A DNA stretch of 63,774 bases, filler included, from Reticulomyxa filosa (lineage: Eukaryota; Protista; Foraminifera): the NCBI GenBank assembly GCA_000512085.1. It is 18 parts of 18 records of this genome, joined end to end, with 100 filler letters (N's around TTAATTAATTAA, not from the genome) between each part and the next. Parts side by side here need not be neighbours in the genome. Positions count along the whole stretch, not along the records: positions 16,834 to 28,202 come from ASPP01019194.1; 17 more parts are not named here. One strand, given 5' to 3'. The notes below the pieces were generated by a model. It did not search any database. It was given only the letters and a program-made list of their open reading frames with translations, and had not been told where the DNA came from. Shown here piece by piece: positions 47 through 28,202 of this stretch. How positions within the stretch are numbered: the first letter of the stretch is position 1; each line of letters opens with the position of its first letter. Position numbers and translations under genes: made by a program.

Positions 47-3000
47 TTGTATATGTATGCAATAATTGATATATTGTATTTGTGTGCCAATCCTTGCACT
101 ATGACTGTAGTCCACACGAGTAATGATAGCGAGAATAATAATAAGGAGAATGACAATGTTGAGACGCTGAATAACTTTTGGTTTGATGTAGCCAACATCA
201 AGTACTTGAAGCAGATTAACTTTTCGAAGCCTCGTTCCAGCGGCGAGGAAGCGAGTGATGCGACGTCGGTGCACTTGAGCTATTTCATTTACTATGAACA
301 CGATCGAAAGGCTAGAAAAGTGGTGATCCTAAACAAACGCTTGTCGGAAGAATACAACCAACTTATTCGGCATTCGTCGTCGCACTTCTCGTCCAATTGG
401 ACATCCCAACACCAATTGTTCGAAAGTGGCGTTGTCGATATTCACCTCAACTTTGGTTCATTCCGTATGGAGCGCAGCTGACACATACGTTTGCGTTGCA
501 TAACGATAATCCCTTAAGTTTGAAAGTGACACCGGTGGAAACGACATTGCCTCCGAATCAAAAAAGTTTTTTATTTTACACATAACATATATGATGTATA
601 TGCGCATAAAAGAAATATTTAATTATTATTTTTAAAAGCAATGAAACAAATAAATAGACGGAGAAGCAAAGTTGGAGTGGGAGCAGTATGCGTTGAACGA
701 TCCAGTGCATACGTATTTGCACCGACGAGAATTGGATTTGAAGCCTTCGTCCGTGAACGTGATAGAAAGCCATGGGTTCAGTTATCTGACAGTTGGTTTG
801 TCGACCACGAGTTTGTACGAATGGATGGTAAAGCATCTGTGTGACGATGGTCCCTACGAGTCAGTGGACCAATGTCTTTCCCAAATCGACGGCTTTGTTT
901 CGTACGCGTTTTTGAATGTCAGTGCGATGGCCCCTTCCATGATTAGACACGCCTTTGAAAATGACTTGTGTTTAGACAGCAGTGATTTATGGCCCAATGC
1001 CAGCAAACAGGAGGAGTCCACTTGTAACACGTCAGATGCAATGGCATGCCAATATCGATGGATGAATACGGCCCTGAGAAGCTCGGTTTTAAGGATACGT
1101 GTGGAGTGGAACATGGCGTATGGATACTATCAACTCGTCCCAAATCCAATTGCATTTGGCTCCTCTTGGCCGTATCAATCGCCACTGAGTCGACGGCTGT
1201 TCCTCGTCAATCACTACAACATCGACTTGCAAATCCAAGATTTGATGCTTTCCAATGACGATAATGTGGATGTCATACTCACCAATACAATCGTCCCTCC
1301 TCATTCCATGGTAGGCTAATACTTTTTCATTTCAGTAATATCTATTCACATCAAAATAAGAGTGTCTCAAATAACACGAACGCAAATACAACAAATAATT
1401 TTTTTTAAAAAAAAAGGTGGAAATTGGTAAAGTGCAATTGAATCCAATAAAGTTATTGTCGTCACGCGAATACGACTACATAAAGATTGAGTTGTGCGAA
1501 GAGAGCCTTCTAAAGAATGAACACTTTGTGAACAGCGGCGCATATCAATTGTATTTGCTGTTTCGTGAAATGGTGGACGAGAACCCGGACATGACGATGA
1601 CGGGATTGTACGATAACAAAGGTGTGTCGTTGTTGGAATTGGTCGTGGACAACTATCGCGGTTACGTGTGGAACACATTATTGCAAAAGAATCTCACGGA
1701 AATGACTCGGACAGTCCATTTGTGGTCGCCGCAATTGGGAAGGATTCCATTGCTTGTTCAGGCCTCTTTGCAAATGCCATCAATCATTCAGTGTCGCGGT
1801 TTGGACTTTGGAGTGGTGGATGTCGGCTCTTCTCTCGGACTTTATGTCCCTGTCGCCAATATCTTTAATCAAACCATTGAAGTGTCATTTGCCCAACTTA
1901 TTGACACCAGCAACGCTGTATTCGTCCCAACTGTCAAGTCTCTCGTCTTGTATCCATTCGAACAGGGCCTTCTCGGTCCTGTCTACTTTTTTCCTCAATG
2001 GGTTGGCTTTCATAGCACTCGTTTGTATTTGCGTAACAATCATACCTTTTTAGAAAGCGTCCAGGTCAATGGGACCGGCATGCAAGGCAATTTGCACTTT
2101 CAGAGTGTTTTGTTCTCCACTCCATCTTCACTGTCACCCGATGGCTCGGTTTTCATCCGCTCTACTTTGCATGCCCCACATATGGAGTCATTGTCCAAAG
2201 ACACGTTTCCATATCGCAATTGGCCGGATCAAGAACATGACGGGGATGATAACATGCATTGGAATGTCAATAACTACTTGGTGCCGCCGCTGCCTTTACC
2301 CAGTTCACTGAACGCAAACCATGAAAAAGGTATCCCAGAAGATGATCTTTTACAAAGTAGAGACGTGTTTTGGATTGAACATACTGACGCCTGGTCACAG
2401 ACAAGCCATTGGACACAGTCATTCGGAAAGTGGTTCGACTTTTTGCTGACATCCAATTTGTATAATCACACAAAAGAGAGACAACAGTTCAAATAATCAT
2501 TTATATAAATATACATATATATTTATATAAATGCAATTTGATGAGTATGCAAAAAAAAAAAAAAAGGTTAAATCGACTGGGACAACGTTTGGCGGTGCGT
2601 TACGACGGAGCTGACTTCGGGCTGAAAAGACAAGAGAACAAACAGTATGAATTTGTGGACAAAGATCTGAAACAGGCATTAGTGAAACGTATGAGTGAAA
2701 AAAAGCCATTGGTGTTAGAGATTCAATTTGCATTGGAAAACCGAGGGAATATTCCAATGCGTTTGGAGTCGATGGCCGTGATGCCTGTAGATGTGTGGAA
2801 ACGCAACGACGCCATCAACGACAGTGTATTGGAACAGTACAATCCATGTCCGCCATTTGAATTGGAAACAGAGCCAGTGCTGACCATTGAAAGATCGGCG
2901 TTGCGAGACAAGCGAAGGCCTTCGAGTGAAAGGCATTATGCCAATCAATACTTTGAGCCCGATATTGTGAGCAGTGCGAGTCCATCCTTATCACCCGTCG

Positions 3001-15845: not shown

Positions 15846-17058
15846 CGAATTAATAATTGATGTTCCAGCTACATTATTATTGTACAGTAATTGTATATCC
15901 CTTAAATATATTAGTATCTAAACAAGAAACCAAACGACGAAAAGAATTAGCCAAGAGACAAATTGCTGCTTCTTCTTCTTTTGTGAGTTTGGATAAAGAC
16001 GACAACGTTCAAGAGATTTTTAGTTGTTCCTTTTTTTTTGAAAGAGCCTTTGCTCAACGATAGCATATTAGCCACGTTTTTTTTATTGAAAATATTGGCA
16101 TAAGATACAATAATATTGATAACATTTGCAATTGTAAATTGCTAATTTGATTGTGTTCATTTTTATGAATTAAATAAGATAATATTTATTATTTAGAAAT
16201 CACGATTATTTAAATATTCTAATATTCCAGTTGTATTGAAAATAGGACATGCTCTTAGATTATACTGAAAATATATCAAAGAAAGTAAACTTATGATTAG
16301 AACATAAGCATGTGCACTACATGTAATACGAAAGATTTGTCAGTTGTATTTCCTTTTGGCAAGTTATACACAATAAAAAGGTTGATATTCCTTAAATATA
16401 ACAATTCGCCGCAAAAAAAACTTGTGGTGATGTGCTGAGTTTTATAAACAAAAAACTCAATGGTTTGTATATTTGTAAAGTCGTTTTTCTACTTTCAAAT
16501 ATTGTTGAAAGTGTCCGAAAGTTTTTATTTTTAGCATATCGCTTGAAATTTGAGAATAAATACTTACCAAATGAATGAGAAAAGAATTTTGCATGAGGGA
16601 AAATTAGTGAGTAAATAGACATTACAAAAAAACTTTTCTATTGATAATACTAAAAACAATAAAAGTAAGAAAACGAAAACTATTGATAAAATCTTTTGTA
16701 TAATAAGAAAACGGTGGTATGTGAACATAGAGCNNNNNNNNNNNNNNNNNNNNNNNNNNNNNNNNNNNNNNNNNNNNTTAATTAATTAANNNNNNNNNNN
16801 NNNNNNNNNNNNNNNNNNNNNNNNNNNNNNNNNTTTTTTTCAAACCTTTTGTTGTCAAGAAAATTTTTGGTCCTATTTGGTATGTCAAACTGCTTTGGAC
16901 TAACTTTGGTTTCTGACCGCTTTTTTTTCACGCTTAATTTGATTATTTGATGTTGCAGCGCGAGGGTGGTACCTTTTTATTGAAATGAAAACATTGCAAA
17001 AATTAACATTTATGTGTCTAAATGAATTTGAATTTTTTAAGTCACTACAATCGAAAAA

Positions 17059-17113
17059 TACGGTTTCGCCCTTCCTTTGGGCTCATCAGTACACTCAAGA
17101 AGTGTAAACCGTA
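17059..17113 (-). ncRNA. Type III hammerhead ribozyme (compact), GUU cleavage triplet
   Basis: Minus strand reads UACGGUU/UACAC-UUCUUGA-GUGUA-CUGAUGA-GCCC-AAAGGAA-GGGC-GAA-ACCGUA. The core is complete and stems I, II and III pair perfectly. Predicted cut between 17107 and 17106. Confidence 0.93.
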
Positions 17114-17555
17114 CATGCGAGCTTTAATACCCTCATCCCCAATAAGCATGAGGGTGAGTTGTAAATACGAAACCGTTAGCCCAGAAGACCAGCATAAGAA
17201 AACACATAAGTGTTTTCTTATACATGTGCACTTGGATTAGATTTCTCTCACCTATTTAGGGTCCTGGAGATCTAACCTACAACAATATGACTTGTGGTAT
17301 GCACACGCGATAGGCTGACTCGACCTTTCATCGCCATTCGAAGTTAGCGATATAGGGGAGAAGCCTCTATGATTAGTGTTCTTTGTTAGGTGGAACTCCG
17401 AGCTTTGACACCAATCGTCAAAATAGTGCGAACACCAGCAAGGTTTCCTAGGCCTAACAAGTCCCACTAAGAGGACAAAAGCAACCCGCAGGTCTGTTTT
17501 TGTGAGCAGAACACTATCGCTCATTCCATTATCTATTACAATTCTATAATGGAGA

Positions 17556-18148
17556 CGGTTTCGCCCTACCATTGGGCTCATCAGTACTCTCAGGTCGGGA
17601 TTACTATCCAGCAGCCAGCATGCCTGCTAACACGCGGGGGGACTTAGAGCGCTATCTCTACCACGATAGCAGGCCTCCTGCCAATTCCGCAATGTGCATT
17701 CACCGCAATTGCTGGGTTCTTCCCTCAGAGGTAAGCTATAACCAGACCGTCGCGCCACTCTACCGTTTGAAGGCCCAGTTGCTTTAGGGCTAACCTAGCG
17801 TGCTCAATTGAGGCACTAGGATCCTCCTATAGTGAGTATTGGTCGGACGGACCATCCAATAGAGTTAACTGCTGCTTTCGGCCATTGCCTACCCGGCAGC
17901 GAGCAGAGCCCTACTTTGGGTTATAGCCTCCCCTGCCCCCCTAGGATAGATATTCAGCTTATTAGGAGGTTATATGAAATTAGTTAATAACCCCATCCTA
18001 CCGGCCATCGTGGTCCTTCTCCCGTGATGACCCTCCAAGAGACTAGTTGGCTGTACAACCATCCCTAGCAGTAGGGTGAGGGGTTATAGGTGAACCCCAT
18101 ATAACACTAATAGGCCTATATCTATCCCCGAAGGGAAGAGTAGACCGT
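17556..18148 (-). ncRNA. Second hammerhead ribozyme with ~550-nt structured insertion in stem I, GUC triplet
   Basis: Core at 17556-17591: GAGAGUA-CUGAUGA-GCCC-AAUGGUA-GGGC-GAA-ACCGU. Complementary substrate ACGGUC/UACUCUU at 18148-18136 completes stems III (5 bp) and I (6 bp + GU). Predicted cut between 18143 and 18142. Confidence 0.75.
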
Positions 18149-19410
18149 TGTTATAGCCTACCAGGCTTCAGGGCACAATCTCCCCTATCCAAAAGGTAGG
18201 ACTTTTGAAATAGATAATAATGTTAAGCTTGAAGGCCTTATGATTTATCTCCCTCTTACTTAACATTATTAAAATTTCGGGTATACTGAAATATGCATAC
18301 TATCTACTGTCATGAGTTAACATGTCATGTCATACATATAAATCATCAAGTGATGATACTGTTTCCTGAACTAAAGTGTTTGTTTGGTCATCCCAAGCTC
18401 GCAATTTCGCACTTGCAAAATTTACTTATACTATGACTTCCCAACACTAGATATGAATCCCTGAAAGGTGGAGCTATCAAAAAAGATGTTACATCTTATA
18501 TTTATGATGGAAATTTAATTATTTACTAGTTGATGACATTGCTAGCGCTTAGCAGTTGTAAGAACATTTTCGAAATGTTTTTTAAAAAAATCGATTAAGG
18601 TGGAAAATAATAAAATTCATTTTGACTACTTTTAAAAAAAAAAAGTGAGTTTTTGCTAATTTTAATATAAAAAAATCTCAATCTCAATCACAAGAATGTT
18701 CATCAAATGACCTTCAATATTAACATTTTCTTTAATCTTCAAAGCTTGTCTTCATTTCTAATCAATATCGATATCTTCAAATGATGTCTATTCAACAACG
18801 ACCGCTACTCGTACCAAAAACTAAAACAAGTATTATCTCTATAGCTGAAGTCGAAGATAGATTTAGTCAAATGTATAATTCTTTTTTAAAGAAAATATTT
18901 ACTTATTGATATCATACTTTTATCAAATTTTTTATCATTGCTATTGAACTATTTTTTAATCTAAAAAAAAATTTTTTTGTATATTGAAACATGAACACTT
19001 TGATCTGCGACTTTTTTCAAAAATCTGGTCATGATCAACAAAAAGATCTAAACCAAGATTCTTACGGTGAAAATAGCTTATTGAGAAATGACGATAAAAA
19101 TAATGTCGATATGGAAGAAAGAAAGCAGACCAACAAAAGAAGAAAACGGAAACACAAAAAAATAAAATATATTTACAAAAAAAGAAAAAATCTAAATAAA
19201 AAAAGAAAAATAGTATTGCAAGATCTACAACCTTCCAACTTTTTCCAATGTCGGGCTAAAAGTTAGTATGATACACTTCAATTTATTTACAAAATAAAAA
19301 CATGTATAACTGTTTTAATCAGGGTATTCCGATCGTAAAAAGCAAATTGAAAGTACTATTAAGTTCCGTGAATAATATTTTCTGTATGTTATTTTTTCAA
19401 ATGATAGACA

Positions 19411-20364
19411 TTGTCTGGTGAAACAATAAATAGAAAACTGAAAACTTTCATTGGAGAAGCGGAACAGAACAAAAATATTAACTATACAGAGAGCATTGCA
19501 AATGCAATACTAGATAATCAAAAAAAAGAAGAATATGAACAGATTGCAAAACTTAACCACATGCGTGCAATAAAATTACAACAACTAACAGATGAACAAA
19601 AAAGAATTGTTCAACAAACGTTTCAAACAGCGGAAAAGAATACACAATCTACAGTATATGGAAAGTTGCGTGCTAGTGACATTCTACGACTAAAGCCAAG
19701 AGGTTGGCTAAATGACGAAATAGTCAACAGCTATGGTGAGATGCTTGAAGATAGGAACAAAATAAGATTTAATAATGGTGAATGTGGCATGATTATATTG
19801 ATGAATTCTTTTTTTTTTACCAAATTGACAAGCAATGCATACGACTATAATGTATTCAATCGATGGATATCATCTAAGGTTATAATTGTAATACGATATA
19901 TTATTATATTTGACATGTCATTACACTAAAATGGTTTTTTTTTTTATCCAAAATAGATCAAGAAAATTGACGTTTTCAAAATAGGTAAAACAATGTTTGA
20001 TTTGGATAAAATCATAGTTCCAATAAACATGAACGATCATTGGTTTTGTATGTGCATTAATATTCGAAAGAAGAGAATTGAATTTTACAATTCAATAAAC
20101 ACTGATCATATAAAACTTTATGATCGTTTCAAAAGATGTATCGAAGATGAAATAAACAACAAAAAATTGATAATGAAAGAAGAATGGAGTTATTATACAC
20201 CTTCCAGCATTCCATTGCAAAAGAATAATTTTGACTGTGGTGTATTTACGTGTAAGTTTATGGATTGGCTATGTGATGATCTCAATCCAGATTTTGAACA
20301 AGAAGATGTTCATGGCTTTAGATTGAAAATTGCATATGAATTAATAACAAATAAATTGTTATAA
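19411..20364 (+). CDS. Ulp1/SENP-family (C48) protease, multi-exon; upstream exons probably from ~18780
   Basis: RLKPRGWLNDEIVNSY, NSFFFTKL, IIVPINMNDHW, FYNS, QKNNFDCGVF; intron ~19879-19957. Confidence 0.9.
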
Positions 20365-21049
20365 CATCGTTGTTTTTTTATGAAATAATTAATTTGAATG
20401 TACATATAAGCTATTCTGCATGTGGAATATATACACTTTTCAAAAAAAAAGTGTTCAACAAATCAGCAACAATATCTCGTTCCAACTCTTGTGTCCAAGT
20501 TTAAACGCTTCATTATGTCTCAAAGAAAATGCAACGACAAAACAGAGCATTTTTTGTTTAATTTGCTAATATAAATCTAATTTACGTATTTGTAGCAGCT
20601 GCATTGAATTGGAAGTCTAAAAAAATCCATTTTATTCACAATTATAATTGAAAATAAAAAACTAAAAACAAAAACAGTGGTTGATCTGGTGACATATTTA
20701 TTGACTCTGCCATTACCGGTTGTGCGGCCTGTTGATGGGACACAGTATTGTGCACCAAATTGAAATTGAGTTGCTGGATATTAGGCTGAAAATACGTCTT
20801 GCCAGATTCATATTGAAACTTTGATAAACATAAATTTAAATAATGAGCCCTATTATAGGAAATTTGGAAATTTTGTAGAAGAAAAAATTTTTGTGTCTGA
20901 ACGGGGTTTATGTAACCGGACTTTTTATTTCTGAATCTCGAACTTCCACATCTTTATCATGATGATGAACATTCTTGTGTGTCTCCTGTCATGCACAATG
21001 ATAGTTCAGCATCCCTTTTTGTAGTTGGGTGCTCAATGTGTTATATATC

Positions 21050-22770
21050 TGTGTCTTGATCTTTGATAGGTCTCCTCCATCTCTGTTTGCAATAACTTGG
21101 GCCAGTCTGTCGAAGGAGTCGCTTCCGCAATGAGGAGTTTGTAGGACTTGTTTGCTTGTTCACAGCGAAGTCTGTGGTATCTCTTTAAAGCCCAGTCGTC
21201 TTGATTTTCCTATGCGTTTGTGTGTTAATGATATTCAAACAATTTCAAACAAATATTGGTTGGATTCATGGTTATCCCGGAGGTTTGAGATACAAGCAAT
21301 AATTCTATCGTAACGCGAAACTCGGCCCTTTTCAAATTGACAACACAGCGCGTGGTTGCCCAGTCGACAATTTGGATGTTTGGATAATTGGCAATCGCTG
21401 GCTTGCTGCTAGTGATGACGCGATGTATGCTGGACTGGACATGACATTGGCAGAGTTGAGGCACTGTAGCCATTGACAATTGGTTAATGGGCCTGCCATA
21501 ATGGATTCTGTAGTGTCTTCATTTTTTCATCGAATGATTGTCCAATTGTGGGAATCTTTCAAGAAATTGGTCCTCATGTGGAGGTGACCTTGGTTGCGTT
21601 CAATAAGTTCCTAAGGATGAGGAGCATTGTTCAAATTGGGCGTTCCATTCTTTAAGAATTACGTTAATCTCTTTTTGTACATATCTTCATCTCCGGTTGG
21701 GATACTGACGATTGTTGCGTTGAATGTTTGATTGTGGGGGATCTGTTTTAGGATATCCATTCGCATTTATTCAAATTGATCTTGGTACCATGTGTATCAG
21801 TCGTTGCGTTGCTTATCTGTGGCAATGATTGAATCATCATTGATATGGTTACTTTCAATGCGTCAGCAAAGATTATGGCAAAGAATGTTCCTCCCAATGG
21901 ATCTCCTTGGTGGACTCCCGATTTGGACATGCTTGGCGTAGCAGCCTCTCGCATATCTATATAACCCAGGAATCTGTTTCCTTACAAATTCCAACAGTTT
22001 TCTTCTTTTACATGTATTGAATGCGTTCTGAAAATCAATTTTTACCAAAACTCCTTTGTCGTTTGTTCGTATGTGTTTGTATATAGCCTTGAATCCATGA
22101 TAGGATATGATTTGGTCCAATGGTTTTGGAGATTTGTTCCGAGCGCTTCTGAAGAAGAATATCGCCTGCTGATCTCGGCGTATTATCTGGTTTTGGAATG
22201 GCAATTAACCTGGCCCCGTATGCTATTGCTTGTGCATCCGAACAAACTTTTACTTCGATTATCAACTGCGCGACCTTTTCCCAATTCGTTAATGTATTGA
22301 ATTCGGTTTGATATGACTCCAAATCCATTAGATGCTGCGCTGTGAAGAGATCGATCCCACCTGACGACGATCTACTTAATTTGTTTATATATTTTGTTAT
22401 TCTTCAACAGTAATGTGTTTGTGAATTGGGATAGGTGGCATGTTGGAATTTTTGTTATGCTCGAACGATGCAATGATATCAGTTGGTGGTACAATGTATG
22501 GCTGTTGATGGTGACAATGATTTGAAAGTTTTCGATACACCTTTTGTTCCTAGCTATGATATCGTTATGTTTATTGGATTGAAGATATTACTGAAATGCT
22601 TCAAAAAATTGTTCCATAATTGATTGTACGATTGATCTATCCCACAATTTTATTCTATTCATTATGGTTTTGGTTATATTGTTAATGTGTGACTGTCCCC
22701 CCTCTTCCGGGATCCCATAGGATTGTTCGAAACATTACCATCCATTTAGCATAAGCATACTTATTATTTC
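21050..22770 (-). mobile_element. Decayed CRE/SLACS-like non-LTR retrotransposon (RT)
   Basis: Broken-frame motifs GARLIAIPKPDNTPR, VKIDFQNAFNTCKR, GVHQGDPLGGTFFA, KINLNKCEW, LWDPGRGG; many stops and frameshifts. Confidence 0.85.
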
Positions 22771-23479
22771 TATTGGCTATATCCATTAATGCTACACTAG
22801 CAATTGAGGCGAAGTGGCTTCTCGATACAATTTTTGCTGGAATGATCCTTCCAAAACTACTAGACTTTTGTGTAGATAGACATGTGAAATGAAAGAAGTG
22901 TAAAAAACACGTAGAAAAAAGAAGCGCAAGACACATTGATACGTTTAATCGACTAAATCAATCCAACAATAAAAAATACCATAAGTAATAATAAATGAAA
23001 GAAAAAAAAGGGTATATAAAAAAAATAAAACAAAAGCTTATTAAAATGGGTTAAATATACAAACAAAGCAAATTGGACCATAAAATGTTCAAAAGTGTTT
23101 ATTTTGTTTGAAAGAGAAAAATAAAGTATGAAATCCAAAAAAAAACAAAAAGCAAACGCTGAATTATTCAAAAAAGGGTGCCCTCTTAACCACAAAAGAG
23201 TTGCATAAGAACAAAACAACCATTTTTCTTAAAAACATTCAATCTTATTATTTACTTATCTCATCGTAAGTGGGTGGTTTCTCTTTTCATAAAATATTTT
23301 TATTTTCAGTTAAAAAAACTCTAACAGTAAACACTTTCACTTAGGTCTACCTTAAAAAAAAAGGGAAAATGGGACGGCGCCCCAGGAACATCGTGACGCC
23401 GTCCAATATTACCTTTTTCTTTTGCTTTTGTCTTCCATTGCTCTTTTTTTGGTGTCATAAACTAGATGTAAGTAGAAAT

Positions 23480-25150
23480 CTGCCCGTGCAATCCCGAGGT
23501 TTTACAGACGACTTGCAAATCTTAACATCATATCATGGAAACGGTCAAGAGCATTATTGAAATGCACCAGCAAAATAACGCGAAACAAGATGTCGCAAGA
23601 AAACTTTCGGAGAAAAACTGGTCATTTGGGACACCAAGCGTATCATCGGATAGAAGCATTCCAGAAGAGTGCCAACAATTGCACCAAACACGCACTAGAA
23701 TCGAACAAAATAGTCACTGGGCGCATAAGAAAAGGCTTCACATCGTCATCCGAGCTCCATAAATTATCCCCTTATTCATGCCGGATAGAAGAAGCAGCAT
23801 TTGAACGCGTGATAAGTTCGTATTCAGAAAATTTGTGTCCGCAACATTCGATAGAGGCCCCAGCATACAAATCATTGGAGCAAATAGCGAGGCATAGGAA
23901 GGGAAAATATCATACCAGCCAGTGAAGACCGCTTCAGCGGTGATGACGACAAAGAACCAAATAGCCAAGATACTAGCCTGTCAGCTTCAATTGAAACAAA
24001 TCCATCACCAAACCAAAAAATATTGTCACTGGGAACACATTGCAAACACGGAAATTACGACAACTGGATCAGCCGTTATTTCTTACACGAAATTGCGTAC
24101 CAAGGAATTGTTAATCAAACATTACTTAGTAATCTCTCCAAACGATGAACAAGAACTCCAAGAAATTCGAAACCGCAATCCAAGACATACAACACCAGAC
24201 TGATATGAAATGGTATCGACGAAGAAAAAGACGCTTTGCTAAATGATGCCTTTGAGGACGATGAAGCATACAATATTGATTATGATGCCCATCCAATAGT
24301 TTCAAAAAAAACATTGCATGATATCCAACAATGGTTCGATGTTTGCCCAGTCGAATGGATGTGGGGTGGTTTTCAGAAGAATTCAAACATAGTTGTTTCA
24401 TCTAACTATTACAATCTCTACAAAAAGGGTCTACTGCTTGCAATGTCGTTTGTCTTTGCCATCAAGTAGTGCAGTTCATGGAATGAACCCCAAATGCTTC
24501 AATGGACGTTTCCAAAACCAGATGAGGTGGCCTTCTATATACAATACAATGATGATGTCATCACCGCCATCCGCAACAAGCATCCAGATGAACTGCTACC
24601 ACGTGAAGTTGTTGCCAACGTACCACCTATCCCAATACACAAACACATCACCGTGGAAGAACTGACAAAATATATTAACAAATTGAGCACTTGAAAGATC
24701 TGGAACAATATCAAACTGAATCAAATACGCTATCCAATTGGTCGAAGGTAGCCCAACTAATAATTTAAGGAAACGTGAGACAATACATCGAGACCTATAG
24801 CCGTGGGTTTTTTGTTTCGTCGTTCAACAGGTGCTATATTACTTCGAAGACACATGAAGAACATTTCAAACCAAATGGGGGCGAACGTTAAGCAAGGCAT
24901 CGAAATCTTTTCACATGGGTTCAAAGCTATTAGAAGAGCTCGAATAGCCCGACACGATGGTGTAGTTGACTGAATTTCTAACCTTTTGAAGCGTGTAGCC
25001 ATTCCACACGAAAGGGAAGTTCGTGCTAATCACGAATCGAACCACAGACCAGGCGACATCTGACTAAAGTGGTTTGGTGATGAGTTTGACGAAAAGTACC
25101 TAGACATAGGCATAACAAATCAAAACATCATCAATCAATAAGCACATAGA
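23480..25150 (+). mobile_element. Second decayed copy of the same CRE-like element, RT core deleted, restriction-like endonuclease end retained
   Basis: 24615-24690 is clearly homologous to the reverse complement of ~22375-22446. RPIAVG...HGFKAI is joined directly to RIARHDGVVD...NHRPGDI (RHD and PD motifs). Confidence 0.75.
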
Positions 25151-28073
25151 AGAGACAACACAGACAATTAGGCTTAGATCTGAGCAAATTTTTATCACTC
25201 ATTTGTAATTACATTTATATTACTTGTTCTTTTGTCAAAAAAAAAAAATTATTTAAAATAATAAGATAACAGTTCAATAGTATAAATTGGAATTATAAAA
25301 AAAATAAGGACATATGCAATTTGGTAACATCAGGTAAATTAGCTCACCAGTAATTGTAAATGAATAAATAGAAAATACTACTTTAACTATTAATCATGTT
25401 ATGGATAAAAAACATACTCTCTAAGAAGTCAAGTATTTTGCCATTCTTATGCAAAATATCTTCAGCTATAAAACAAAACAAAGTAAACCTGTTTCGTTAA
25501 AAGATCAATTATAAATCTCTTATCTTTCTTTTTTATTTTGTTGGATCCATGCACACGTGTTTTATTTTGCTCTTTTCATTTATTTTCAAAATAAAACAGT
25601 ATCAATCCAAGTTTAAAATGAATTCTATTATACCAAAACAATTTTTTATAAGATATATAAATATACTTCTGTTATAAAATTTAAAAAAATTGTGTAATCA
25701 CATATGTAACTTGTTTCTCCTCTAAAAAAACTAATATGAATTAGAGTGACTCAAAATGCAAAATAATTTCATTTTAGAAAAAATTACTTGGAATTGATAA
25801 TTTTAATTTTGAAAATATAATTGGCTGTAATAAAAGGGATGAATTATGACATTAATACCTAGTCCAATGAAATATGAATAAATTATTTTTATTCAAAATG
25901 TATGTGTTATTGCAATTGCAAATTATGGAAGAAATCTTGCTTTCGAAAAAGTTCTATAAAAAATTGTTGTAAATAAAAAATAATGGTAATGCAAAATTTC
26001 ATAATATTAATTTATCATCTATTTTTGAGCGAGAAATCAGCAGTATTTTTTAAATCAAAAATAGTATTTTAAAATTGAAATGGTTAAAACTACTTCTAAA
26101 ACAAATTAATACAAAGTAATCATAAAGTAAAATCATTTGACATCCTAATTTAATGTTTAATGTGATCGATTTAATGATATCAAAATATTCTACTTATTTA
26201 TTTTACAGCTTATATATATGCATTATTTGATATTTTTATAAAAGACAAATCAAAATTGTAGCTTGCCGATAGTCTTATTAGTTGGTCCTGAGTCTGTTAG
26301 AGCTTTTTAGCATTTAAAATTCTTTTTTTTTCTTGATGTGGCAATTTTATGAACAAGTTTTTTCGAATTGTTTTCCTAAAAAAAAAAAAAAAAACTTTTT
26401 TTTTTAAGTTTGTTAAATTTTTTTGATGTATATGTGTATATTTTTTAGTTTTGATTAGGTGTTTGAGTTTGCATTTGTTTTGTTTTACAGCGCACTTAGC
26501 AAGAGTTTACTTTAATTTTGTGACAAAGTGAAAGGTTTTTAAACCGTATTTTTTTTAAAAAGTGTTTAATGCATATTAATAAATATTTTTTTATAAGTTT
26601 AATTATTGGATAACTAATGTTTTACATTCAAGTATATTGCGCATTACAAGTGGTCGTTTTAGAACTTTTATGCTTATTGTTTATTTAGATATATTTTATT
26701 GGAAGAACTTTTATTACAATTATAATCGTAAACTATGCCATTATATATCAACTTTAATGATTTTTAAATGCAATGTGAACAAAAACTGTAGTTGATTACT
26801 TTGTTTCTGAAACCTTAATACGACGAAGCATCATATTATCATTATTGCTCAACAGACGCATACGATACATGTTCAATCGACAACAAAAATAAAATAGATC
26901 AGCTAATCATTTGCATAGCTCCAATTAAAAATCTCTTTACACTTTTCTTGGCGGATGAACGGTTCATTCCATTGTTGTTATTGGTTTCATATTTCATCTC
27001 ATTACTAGTGCTGCTCTTATTACCAAAGTCTTGATGGAGCCAAGTATGGAGTCGGTAAGTGTATCCTTTCTTTTTCTGCCTCTGCTTTATCAAATGAGAA
27101 AAATACAAATAAGAAAGTTCTATTTTTAATCCCAGGAACTGTAGGAATACCGCGAGTGAAAAAAGACAAAGAATGGTGGACCAACATACATCGGGATATT
27201 TTATCACGAATCACTAGTCAAACTTTGCCAGTGCATTTTTGGGTTTAATCCAACTGAAATTACATATACTTTATCAACACTTGTGTTCAATCTGTCCACG
27301 GCCACTGTGGACTGGTTCTTGTGTTTGTTCGCAGCCACTGGAAGACTTTACGGCCGCCCTGCGAGATGGCTGCACACTCCTCACCCCGACTTTGTCTCCC
27401 AATCACTATGGCAAGACAGAGTTTTAGTGAAGATTCAACCCATTCCCATAATTACTACAAATACTCCATTTGCGACTCCATTTGCGACTCCATTTGCGAG
27501 GCCCATCGCTCCATCACGATTTCGCCCAAGTTCAGTCTACGATTTCAAGACTTTAGTTAATACTTTGGAAGAATTCAAAAAAATACAATTTTGGCCGAAG
27601 TTGGTTTACATTTGTTTAGATACATATATATATATTTCCATTTTTATTCCGACACAAGGACAATCGACAAGCGAAAATTCATCTATACTGGAAATGGATA
27701 CGCAAATGGAAACGGAAATGGAAAAACAACAATACATTTTTCAATATGTTGTTATGTGTCGTTTTTAGTCTTAAGTTGGGTTGTAGTTGTCGTTATGTGT
27801 ACTAAATTGTTTCATAATAGCAACTTTTTTTGAGTTATTATCTGTACGAATATAGTCAAAAAAAGTACGTTTTAAAGAGCATGAGTTAGTCTAATTTAAT
27901 ATAAAAAAAAAGGAAAAAACTGAAAAAGAAAAAATTAGACAAATGTTATCTTGTTTGCTTTTGTAAAATTTGTCAGGAACTTTGAAAGAAATTAGCAGAA
28001 AAAGTATTTTGAATATTTTCAAAAAAAAATTAAACATTCGTTTAAAACAAAGAAAAATAACGAATGTATTTTA

Positions 28074-28202
28074 TGCTTGAAATTGGAAAGCTTCAAATTA
28101 AATTGCTTGAAATTGAGTTGCTTGAAATTAAATTGCTGTAATCTAGTTGCTGTAATTCAGTTGCTGTAATTGAGATGCTTGTAATTGAGTTGCTGTAATT
28201 GA
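28074..28202. repeat. Degenerate 14-15 bp tandem repeat (TGCTGTAATTGAGT-like), ~8 units, running into gap
   Basis: Direct reading. Confidence 0.85.

Follow-up and report, generated by a model that had tools for sequence, protein, structure and literature searches.

A discontinuous and a compact hammerhead ribozyme around a structured non-coding kilobase in the genome of the foraminiferan Reticulomyxa filosa

Introduction

Can a genomic locus with two hammerhead cores on one strand, one of them without a local substrate, give rise to a circular RNA in a foraminiferan? The question is raised by a piece of the Reticulomyxa filosa assembly (GenBank ASPP01019194.1) for which a preliminary description, made from the sequence alone, had proposed that a twin-hammerhead cassette excises and self-circularises a non-coding RNA of 1036 nt. 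Positions below refer to the window, i.e., the whole stretch of 63,774 nucleotides that was analysed; the work reported here was confined to positions 16834–28202 of it, an 11.4-kb piece with one locus. The upstream, split ribozyme is designated HHR1, the downstream, compact one HHR2, the insert in loop I of HHR1 lobe 1, and the segment between the two cores lobe 2 (Table 1).

Table 1. Features of the ribozyme locus and of the adjacent gene.
Feature	Position	Strand	Remarks
Whole element (GC-rich block)	17060–18203	minus	Unsupervised two-change-point fit
5' leader, released by the predicted first cut	18149–18203	minus	Local hairpins, or competitor of the split hammerhead
HHR1, substrate half	18136–18148	minus	Stem III 5' strand, GUC, stem I 5' strand, U at 1.7
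Lobe 1, insert in loop I of HHR1	17594–18134	minus	541 nt, 52% GC, folding z −3.9
HHR1, enzyme half	17555–17593	minus	Loop I end, stem I 3' strand, CUGAUGA, stem II, GAAA, stem III 3' strand
Lobe 2	17113–17554	minus	442 nt, 43% GC, strongly folded, z −5.8
Putative PBS-like 18-mer, weak	17396–17413	minus	Reverse complement resembles tRNA 3' end with CCA
HHR2, compact type III hammerhead	17059–17113	minus	GUU triplet; Rfam match and MFE fold
Predicted excised monomer	17107–18142	minus	1036 nt, inferred from the two cuts
T5 run directly after HHR2	17054–17058	minus	Only run of at least five T between 18400 and 17003
Only ORF of at least 70 aa on the ribozyme strand	17252–17581	minus	109 aa
Ulp1/C48 SUMO-protease gene, in pieces	18991–20364	plus	ORFs 18991–19266, 19411–19929, 19993–20364

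Results and Discussion

Boundaries and Composition of the Element

The element stands out as a block with 48% GC between flanks of 27–30%, a composition sharply unlike that of host DNA. The block spans both ribozymes: it stops at 17060, the end of HHR2, where the stem III strand common to both ribozymes has its final base, and starts 55 nt before the HHR1 substrate. AT-rich, host-like DNA is found on both sides; about 225 nt separate the element from the end of the piece, and the contig runs on into a Reticulomyxa-type Ulp1 gene. A 14-bp hairpin is located just upstream of the block (18215–18271, minus strand), and the folding z-score over 18100–18400 is −3 to −3.8; the element may thus start further upstream than 18203. 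The T5 run after HHR2 is a possible, if weak, candidate for a Pol III terminator, and three T4 runs are present inside the element. The view that the element carries no credible ORF was borne out, since the 109-aa reading frame had no match in Pfam or sequence databases and corresponded to no family, homologue or recorded gene.

The Compact Ribozyme

The downstream core had been described as a complete type III ribozyme with a GUU triplet, and an Infernal search with the Rfam hammerhead models had been suggested. This search found HHR2 at full length: the match to RF00008 (Hammerhead_3) at 17058–17114 on the minus strand covers all 54 model positions and scores 44 bits (E = 4.3e-7), just below the gathering score of 48.5 for this family, and is the only credible RNA found by Rfam in the piece. 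The conserved core (CUGANGA, GAAA and NUH) and three helices are all present, with helix III open. In isolation, the hammerhead is the minimum free energy (MFE) structure of HHR2, with stem probabilities of mostly 0.92–1.0. The predicted cut falls at 17107/17106, after GUU, which is a slower hammerhead triplet. The use of GUU in hammerheads is permitted (PMC3138052).

The Split Ribozyme and Its Distant Substrate

The upstream core, placed at 17556–17591 in the preliminary description, is real, although its stem III strand extends one base further, to 17555. It comprises CUGAUGA at 17584–17578, stem II at 17577–17574/17566–17563, GAAA at 17562–17559, and the 3' strand of stem III at 17558–17555. 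Rfam missed HHR1 even at E-values up to 10, and the enzyme half was detected by a custom model, R1, with 26.6 bits (E = 1.2e-6). No valid local NUH substrate is available to this core. The proposed pairing with 18148–18136 was corroborated: the GUC at 18143 is its best Watson–Crick substrate in 22.7 kb (both strands of the piece), with 4 bp in stem III and 6 bp in stem I, against a total of 7 bp for the runner-up. When the 2 kb upstream were shuffled 2000 times with dinucleotides preserved, such a substrate never arose; a much looser, GU-tolerant pattern was matched in 64 cases. The cut is predicted at 18143/18142, about 550 nt upstream of the core (17555–17591), and HHR1 also has the core and helices of a type III hammerhead, with the 541-nt insert accommodated in loop I.

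As originally noted, the two cores are nearly identical (35 of 38 nt); they are 495 nt apart, and no hammerhead core other than those at 17059–17113 and 17555–17591 occurs on either strand of the piece. An antisense ribozyme was considered and rejected, since Rfam, pattern and custom-model searches revealed none on the plus strand. With positions 18134–17594 removed in silico, HHR1 becomes compact, with loop I shortened to 5 nt and resembling that of HHR2, and aligns with HHR2 without gaps over 53 nt. Of the six differences between them, three lie in loops and one at position 17 (C or U); the other two make up pair 4 of stem I, which is U-A in HHR1 and A-U in HHR2, i.e., a compensated change, located across the insert in HHR1. 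Owing to this pair, each core is matched specifically to its own substrate. None of the six differences breaks either fold; six random substitutions spare the core and stems in 0.03% (no GU) to 0.2% (GU allowed) of trials. The U at position 1.7 and the A ending loop II, which we take to form the loop–loop contact of type III hammerheads, are kept in both copies.

The 14-nt stretch 18148–18135 is identical to the HHR2 substrate at 12 positions, and on such sequence grounds the distant HHR1 substrate is a true paralogue of that of HHR2. The tolerated differences show selection on both folds after the duplication, not necessarily after the arrival of the insert; the compensated pair could predate it. 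These observations make it hardly credible that the long-range pairing is a matter of chance or that the sequence is foreign or misassembled: a composition far from that of host DNA and the short distance to the piece end would fit such an artefact, but the shuffles yielded no substrate, the substrate is a paralogue of that of HHR2 with a compensated change, and the flanks are host-like on both sides, with the contig continuing into a Reticulomyxa-type gene. A long-range split hammerhead and cleavage at both predicted sites are well supported by covariation, modelled folding and composition.

Folding of the Insert and the Leader

The complete split HHR1 is the MFE structure of 18150–17553. In this structure lobe 1 consists of three arms (18135–17936, 17935–17726 and 17724–17597, of 200, 210 and 128 nt, respectively) meeting at stem I. 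The probability of stem I is 0.97 with lobe 1; shuffling the lobe lowers it to 0.20 on average, and a value as high was reached by only 2 of 70 such sequences. In the model, the insert thus behaves as a part of the RNA. Both lobes are more stable than shuffles of their sequences (z-scores in Table 1). Complementarity to the core is modestly enriched in the 3' part of lobe 2, with anti-core segments near 17490–17453, 17176–17168 and 17122–17107 (p of about 0.03 each, uncorrected).

The two lobes share no homology, and the idea that lobe 1 is a diverged copy of lobe 2 was rejected. Neither contains a tRNA or another Rfam family. Some segments resemble by eye group II intron domain V, the group I element S, loop B of the hairpin ribozyme or a telomerase template; these resemblances were dropped, since they had no partner strands or Rfam support. 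The PBS-like 18-mer is the sole match in the piece of a post hoc tRNA-arm pattern, lacks the T-loop UUC, and is not preceded by an LTR end. The TpA ratio of lobe 1 is 1.54 (CpG 0.58), compared with 0.95 in lobe 2 and 0.65–0.70 in host DNA.

The predicted behaviour of HHR1 depends on the leader. With the leader unconstrained in an equilibrium model, the probability of HHR1 stem III is 0–0.03 and that of stem II 0–0.58, and the energy cost of HHR1 in the presence of the leader is 0.3–7.2 kcal/mol, depending on the window folded. When the leader's own hairpins are fixed, the probabilities of stems I, II and III are 0.97, 0.98 and 0.85, respectively. The leader may keep these hairpins during transcription, upon which the HHR1 fold would return; these modelled effects make HHR1 activity plausible but context-dependent. 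A 10-nt repeat occurs both in the leader (18162–18150) and in arm B of lobe 1 (17929–17919), and the two segments compete for pairing with 17742–17730 (13 and 11 bp, respectively), a possible conformational switch. The 13-bp helix does not exceed chance expectation (27 of 300 shuffles), and neither does leader–core complementarity (p = 0.16).

The same features bear on a rival account, in which an unrelated 541-nt insertion into loop I of the first ribozyme broke an ordinary, retrozyme-like twin type III unit of 495 nt and left a silent relic that is either untranscribed or cut only by HHR2. We regard this as unlikely, though it has several points in its favour: deletion of the insert restores a compact hammerhead, the lobes differ in GC content and TpA ratio, the leader disfavours HHR1 at equilibrium, and decayed mobile elements occur in the neighbourhood (see below). 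It is less easily reconciled with the finding that no substitution has damaged either ribozyme, with an insert that outperforms 68 of 70 shuffles in closing on stem I and has no clear terminal inverted repeat (TIR) or target-site duplication (TSD), or with the strong folding kept in both lobes. The element probably originated as a 495-nt twin-hammerhead unit whose first ribozyme gained an insert and yet stayed foldable.

The Predicted 1036-nt RNA and Its Closure

From the ribozyme motifs, covariation, predicted folds and boundaries described above, we infer transcription, both cuts and ligation in the following order. A minus-strand transcript through 18203–17060 would be made, and lobe 1 would fold into its three arms, bringing the substrate 18148–18136 to the core 17591–17555 to form a discontinuous type III hammerhead. 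HHR1 would then cut at 18143/18142 and HHR2 at 17107/17106. The freed non-coding RNA, the coordinates and length of which agree with those first given (18142 to 17107, 1036 nt), would have ends lying near each other, namely a 5'-OH and a 2',3'-cyclic phosphate, as left by hammerhead cleavage, and a host RtcB or tRNA ligase would join them into a branched circle, within which lobe 2 would mostly pair the internal core away. In our estimate, this retrozyme-like cassette, with both ribozymes cutting and a host ligase closing the RNA, has about an even chance of being the correct model.

Folding of the monomer is consistent with this order of events. Modelled as a branched circle, it is 68% paired; the exterior loop of the linear MFE structure has only 8 unpaired nucleotides, which places the predicted ends close together, and the internal core is sequestered by pairing with the 3' portion of lobe 2. 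Similar masking of the core has been described for retrozyme and viroid circles (PMC5680766).

Self-circularisation through a hammerhead rebuilt at the junction, as envisaged in the preliminary description, fared less well. In this variant, which requires no protein, the internal core would exchange the leader ACGGUC for the monomer 3'-terminal ACGGUU. The sequence is compatible with it, stem III being identical in both copies and stem I matching the monomer 5' end, and natural hammerheads are able to ligate (PMC7229834). However, the junction hammerhead lies 3.9–4.5 kcal/mol above the MFE structure of the monomer or circle and its stem III has a probability of 0.001, while tested animal retrozyme monomers yielded only 1–3% circles by self-ligation, compared with 30 to over 80% with RtcB (PMC7229834). 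These figures favour closure by a host ligase, and we consider protein-free closure very improbable; moreover, the stem III sequence is largely common to the whole ribozyme family, so that its identity in the two copies needs no exchange as an explanation. Nor is a junction-spanning hammerhead peculiar in itself: to our knowledge, the ribozyme spans the junction in every retrozyme or hammerhead-viroid circle. What sets the element apart is that its two ribozyme copies are asymmetric and that loop I of one of them holds a 541-nt insert.

Both ribozymes could also cut without appreciable ligation, the product being a linear structured non-coding RNA, or a longer transcript being processed or destabilised in this way; tandem hammerheads around prophage genes and the Clec2 3' UTR ribozyme would be the models for this outcome. 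Uncapped, untailed linear RNA is short-lived in a eukaryote, which speaks against such trimming. Tandem prophage hammerheads do cleave without detectable circles (PMC3088659), the nearest ribozymes found are of the compact phage type, two of them lying 348 nt apart around a small ORF, and retrotransposition exerts no selection for circularity here because the circle cannot regenerate the locus. On the other hand, the predicted ends are of the type joined by tRNA ligases (PMC7229834) and are adjacent in the predicted fold. Altogether, we judge linear trimming to be a distinctly improbable outcome.

The predicted circle contains the whole of HHR1 but only six bases of HHR2, so that its reverse transcription cannot rebuild the locus. 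Any mobility must use the uncleaved 1.14-kb RNA, or else the locus is a one-way producer. Beyond ligase-mediated closure of the retrozyme-like cassette, it is tempting, though doubtful, to see in the locus a gene that the host maintains for a ribozyme-made circular RNA, its discontinuous hammerhead, with a 541-nt functional domain in loop I, and its disposable compact hammerhead forming a one-way cassette, or else the first member of a rhizarian class of retroelements with ribozymes that moves via uncleaved RNA.

Genomic Neighbourhood

The Ulp1 gene is transcribed away from the ribozyme cassette, and its ORF pieces are probably split by introns. Its four closest relatives are all R. filosa proteins, with identities of up to 74%, and the gene shares 80% DNA identity with contig ASPP01005268.1; by these comparisons, it is one member of a Reticulomyxa-specific paralogue family, and the host is R. 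filosa or closely related to it. No ribozyme was found at four Reticulomyxa Ulp1 paralogue loci, and the cassette is therefore not a fixed partner of this family.

At 22375–24687, imperfect TIRs of about 76 nt enclose 2.3 kb in which the ORFs are fragmented and nothing matches Pfam significantly; the region looks like a decayed DNA transposon, with no TSD evident. Frameshifted ORF pieces at 21866–22328, on the ribozyme strand and 3.7 kb upstream of the cassette, contain motifs that by eye resemble those of non-LTR reverse transcriptases (LIAIPKP, KIDFQNAFN), and searches of Pfam and PDB gave no reverse transcriptase match for them. A short repeat (27465–27495 and 27692–27722) is present as an inverted copy 196 nt apart, and a tandem repeat with a 15-nt period occupies the end of the piece (28078–28193).

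Relatives of the Ribozymes and the Element

Exact and relaxed core patterns, searched for in viral, metagenome and prokaryotic genome contigs, matched compact phage-type hammerheads and otherwise only chance sequences; the body of the element had no relative there, and a blastn search against phages and plasmids gave no match to the element. The closest ribozyme sequences found, of the tandem-prophage kind, are about 81–84% identical over 51–54 nt. The family of the two ribozymes is also represented in phage-like contigs, where stems I and III are similar, a likeness that is partly by construction because the search pattern fixed part of these stems.

In six phage-like metagenome contigs (L004, L006, L009, L016, L018 and L023), a ribosome-binding site is immediately preceded by a type III hammerhead; L023 contains two hammerheads (838–890 and 1183–1240, plus strand), 348 nt apart around a small ORF, where related contigs have one. 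In another phage contig (L001, 11704–11760, minus strand; the same as L013), the stems of a type III hammerhead are nearly identical to those of HHR1. A metagenome contig, L015, contains a type I hammerhead (781–840, plus strand).

Comparison with Known Systems

Circles of plant LTR retrozymes measure 600–1000 nt with about 55% GC, those of Eucalyptus 900–1034 nt (PMC4918200, PMC5680766); the element comes close to these values in both size and GC content. As in these retrozymes, a GC-rich non-coding RNA of about 1 kb is bounded by a pair of type III hammerheads of like orientation (PMC4918200, PMC5680766); it is predicted to be branched, with ligatable ends and with the core paired away in the circle. 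Plant LTR retrozymes are characterised by multiple genomic copies and abundant circular RNA, a PBS for tRNA-Met after the 5' LTR, a PPT before the 3' LTR, and a TSD of 4 bp. Unlike them, the element has no LTRs of 300–400 bp, only the 38-nt core being repeated, and no convincing PBS or PPT. No clear TSD was seen around it: the only candidates were AT-rich 7–8-mers away from the GC boundaries, and a 4-bp duplication would be recognisable only by comparison with an empty site. Similarity between the flanks of the two ribozymes does not exceed that of shuffled sequences (p = 0.29–0.91), which agrees with the earlier remark that there are no long direct repeats outside the ribozymes and led us to reject decayed LTRs. 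The judgement that this is not a classic retrozyme thus stands. Further differences are the asymmetric ribozymes, one of them split by 541 nt, the foraminiferan host, and a circle that has no compact ribozyme and cannot template the locus.

The precedent for the split ribozyme is mammalian. Discontinuous type III hammerheads with 150–1500 nt in helix I occur naturally (PMC6155905), and that of Clec2d reduces reporter expression by 80% (PMC2950038). HHR1 resembles these Clec2 3' UTR ribozymes in having halves hundreds of nucleotides apart in helix/loop I (PMC6155905, PMC2950038). Each of them, however, is a single ribozyme in an mRNA, while HHR1 is paired with a second, compact ribozyme and its insert is a compact three-arm domain; no Clec2-like gene is present upstream on the minus strand, the nearest gene being the divergent Ulp1 gene on the plus strand. 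Split type III hammerheads and twin-hammerhead circles are thus each known already, and the claim of an unfamiliar architecture has to be narrowed to their combination: within a literature search of incomplete coverage, we found no report of a hammerhead in Reticulomyxa or of a split ribozyme combined with a compact one. Putative tandem-hammerhead elements have been reported from algae and oomycetes. The feature itself is real and its architecture unusual, with a discontinuous and a compact hammerhead enclosing about 1 kb of structured non-coding sequence in the genome of a foraminiferan.

Metazoan non-LTR retrozymes likewise encode a ribozyme-delimited RNA in the genome without LTRs, and theirs is circularised by RtcB (PMC7229834), but they are tandem repeats of 170–400 nt with type I hammerheads, whereas the element has type III hammerheads and an unrepeated body. 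With tandem prophage hammerheads (PMC3088659; compare L023) it shares the duplication of the ribozyme alone; the prophage pairs differ in that both ribozymes are compact and lie around ORFs that have ribosome-binding sites, and in that no circles were detected (PMC3088659). The type III hammerhead and high pairing (68%) recall hammerhead viroids and viroid-like circular RNAs, including zeta viruses (10.1101/2022.07.19.500677; 10.64898/2026.09.16.752053). Unlike them, the element is encoded in DNA, has its ribozymes on one strand, and is branched rather than rod-like. As regards zeta viruses, 1036 nt is not a multiple of three, the longest stretch free of stops in the standard code has 124 codons, and there is no endless ORF. 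An integrated unit-length or multimeric copy of a circle (retroviroid), in which identical sequence would follow both cut sites, was also rejected, since cut 1 is followed by lobe 1 and cut 2 by a 5-nt loop and the second core.

If expressed, the element would extend ribozyme-made circular RNAs to Rhizaria and would represent, within the literature searched, a natural discontinuous hammerhead outside mammalian Clec2 genes and the first to serve as half of a twin-ribozyme cassette. Covariance-model screens score split ribozymes poorly, as the failure of Rfam to detect HHR1 illustrates, so that the design may be widespread and overlooked in genomic as well as viroid-like RNAs. Since the circle cannot regenerate the locus, the element offers a test of whether retrozyme-type circles are retained for host function as opposed to transposition. 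In the synthetic Tornado system, two twister ribozymes trim a transcript and lie outside the circle, which is closed by a host ligase; the element differs from this artificial design in that it keeps one catalytic core inside. If the reading as a one-way cassette is true, the locus would parallel synthetic twin-ribozyme circular-RNA systems as a natural design in a eukaryote.
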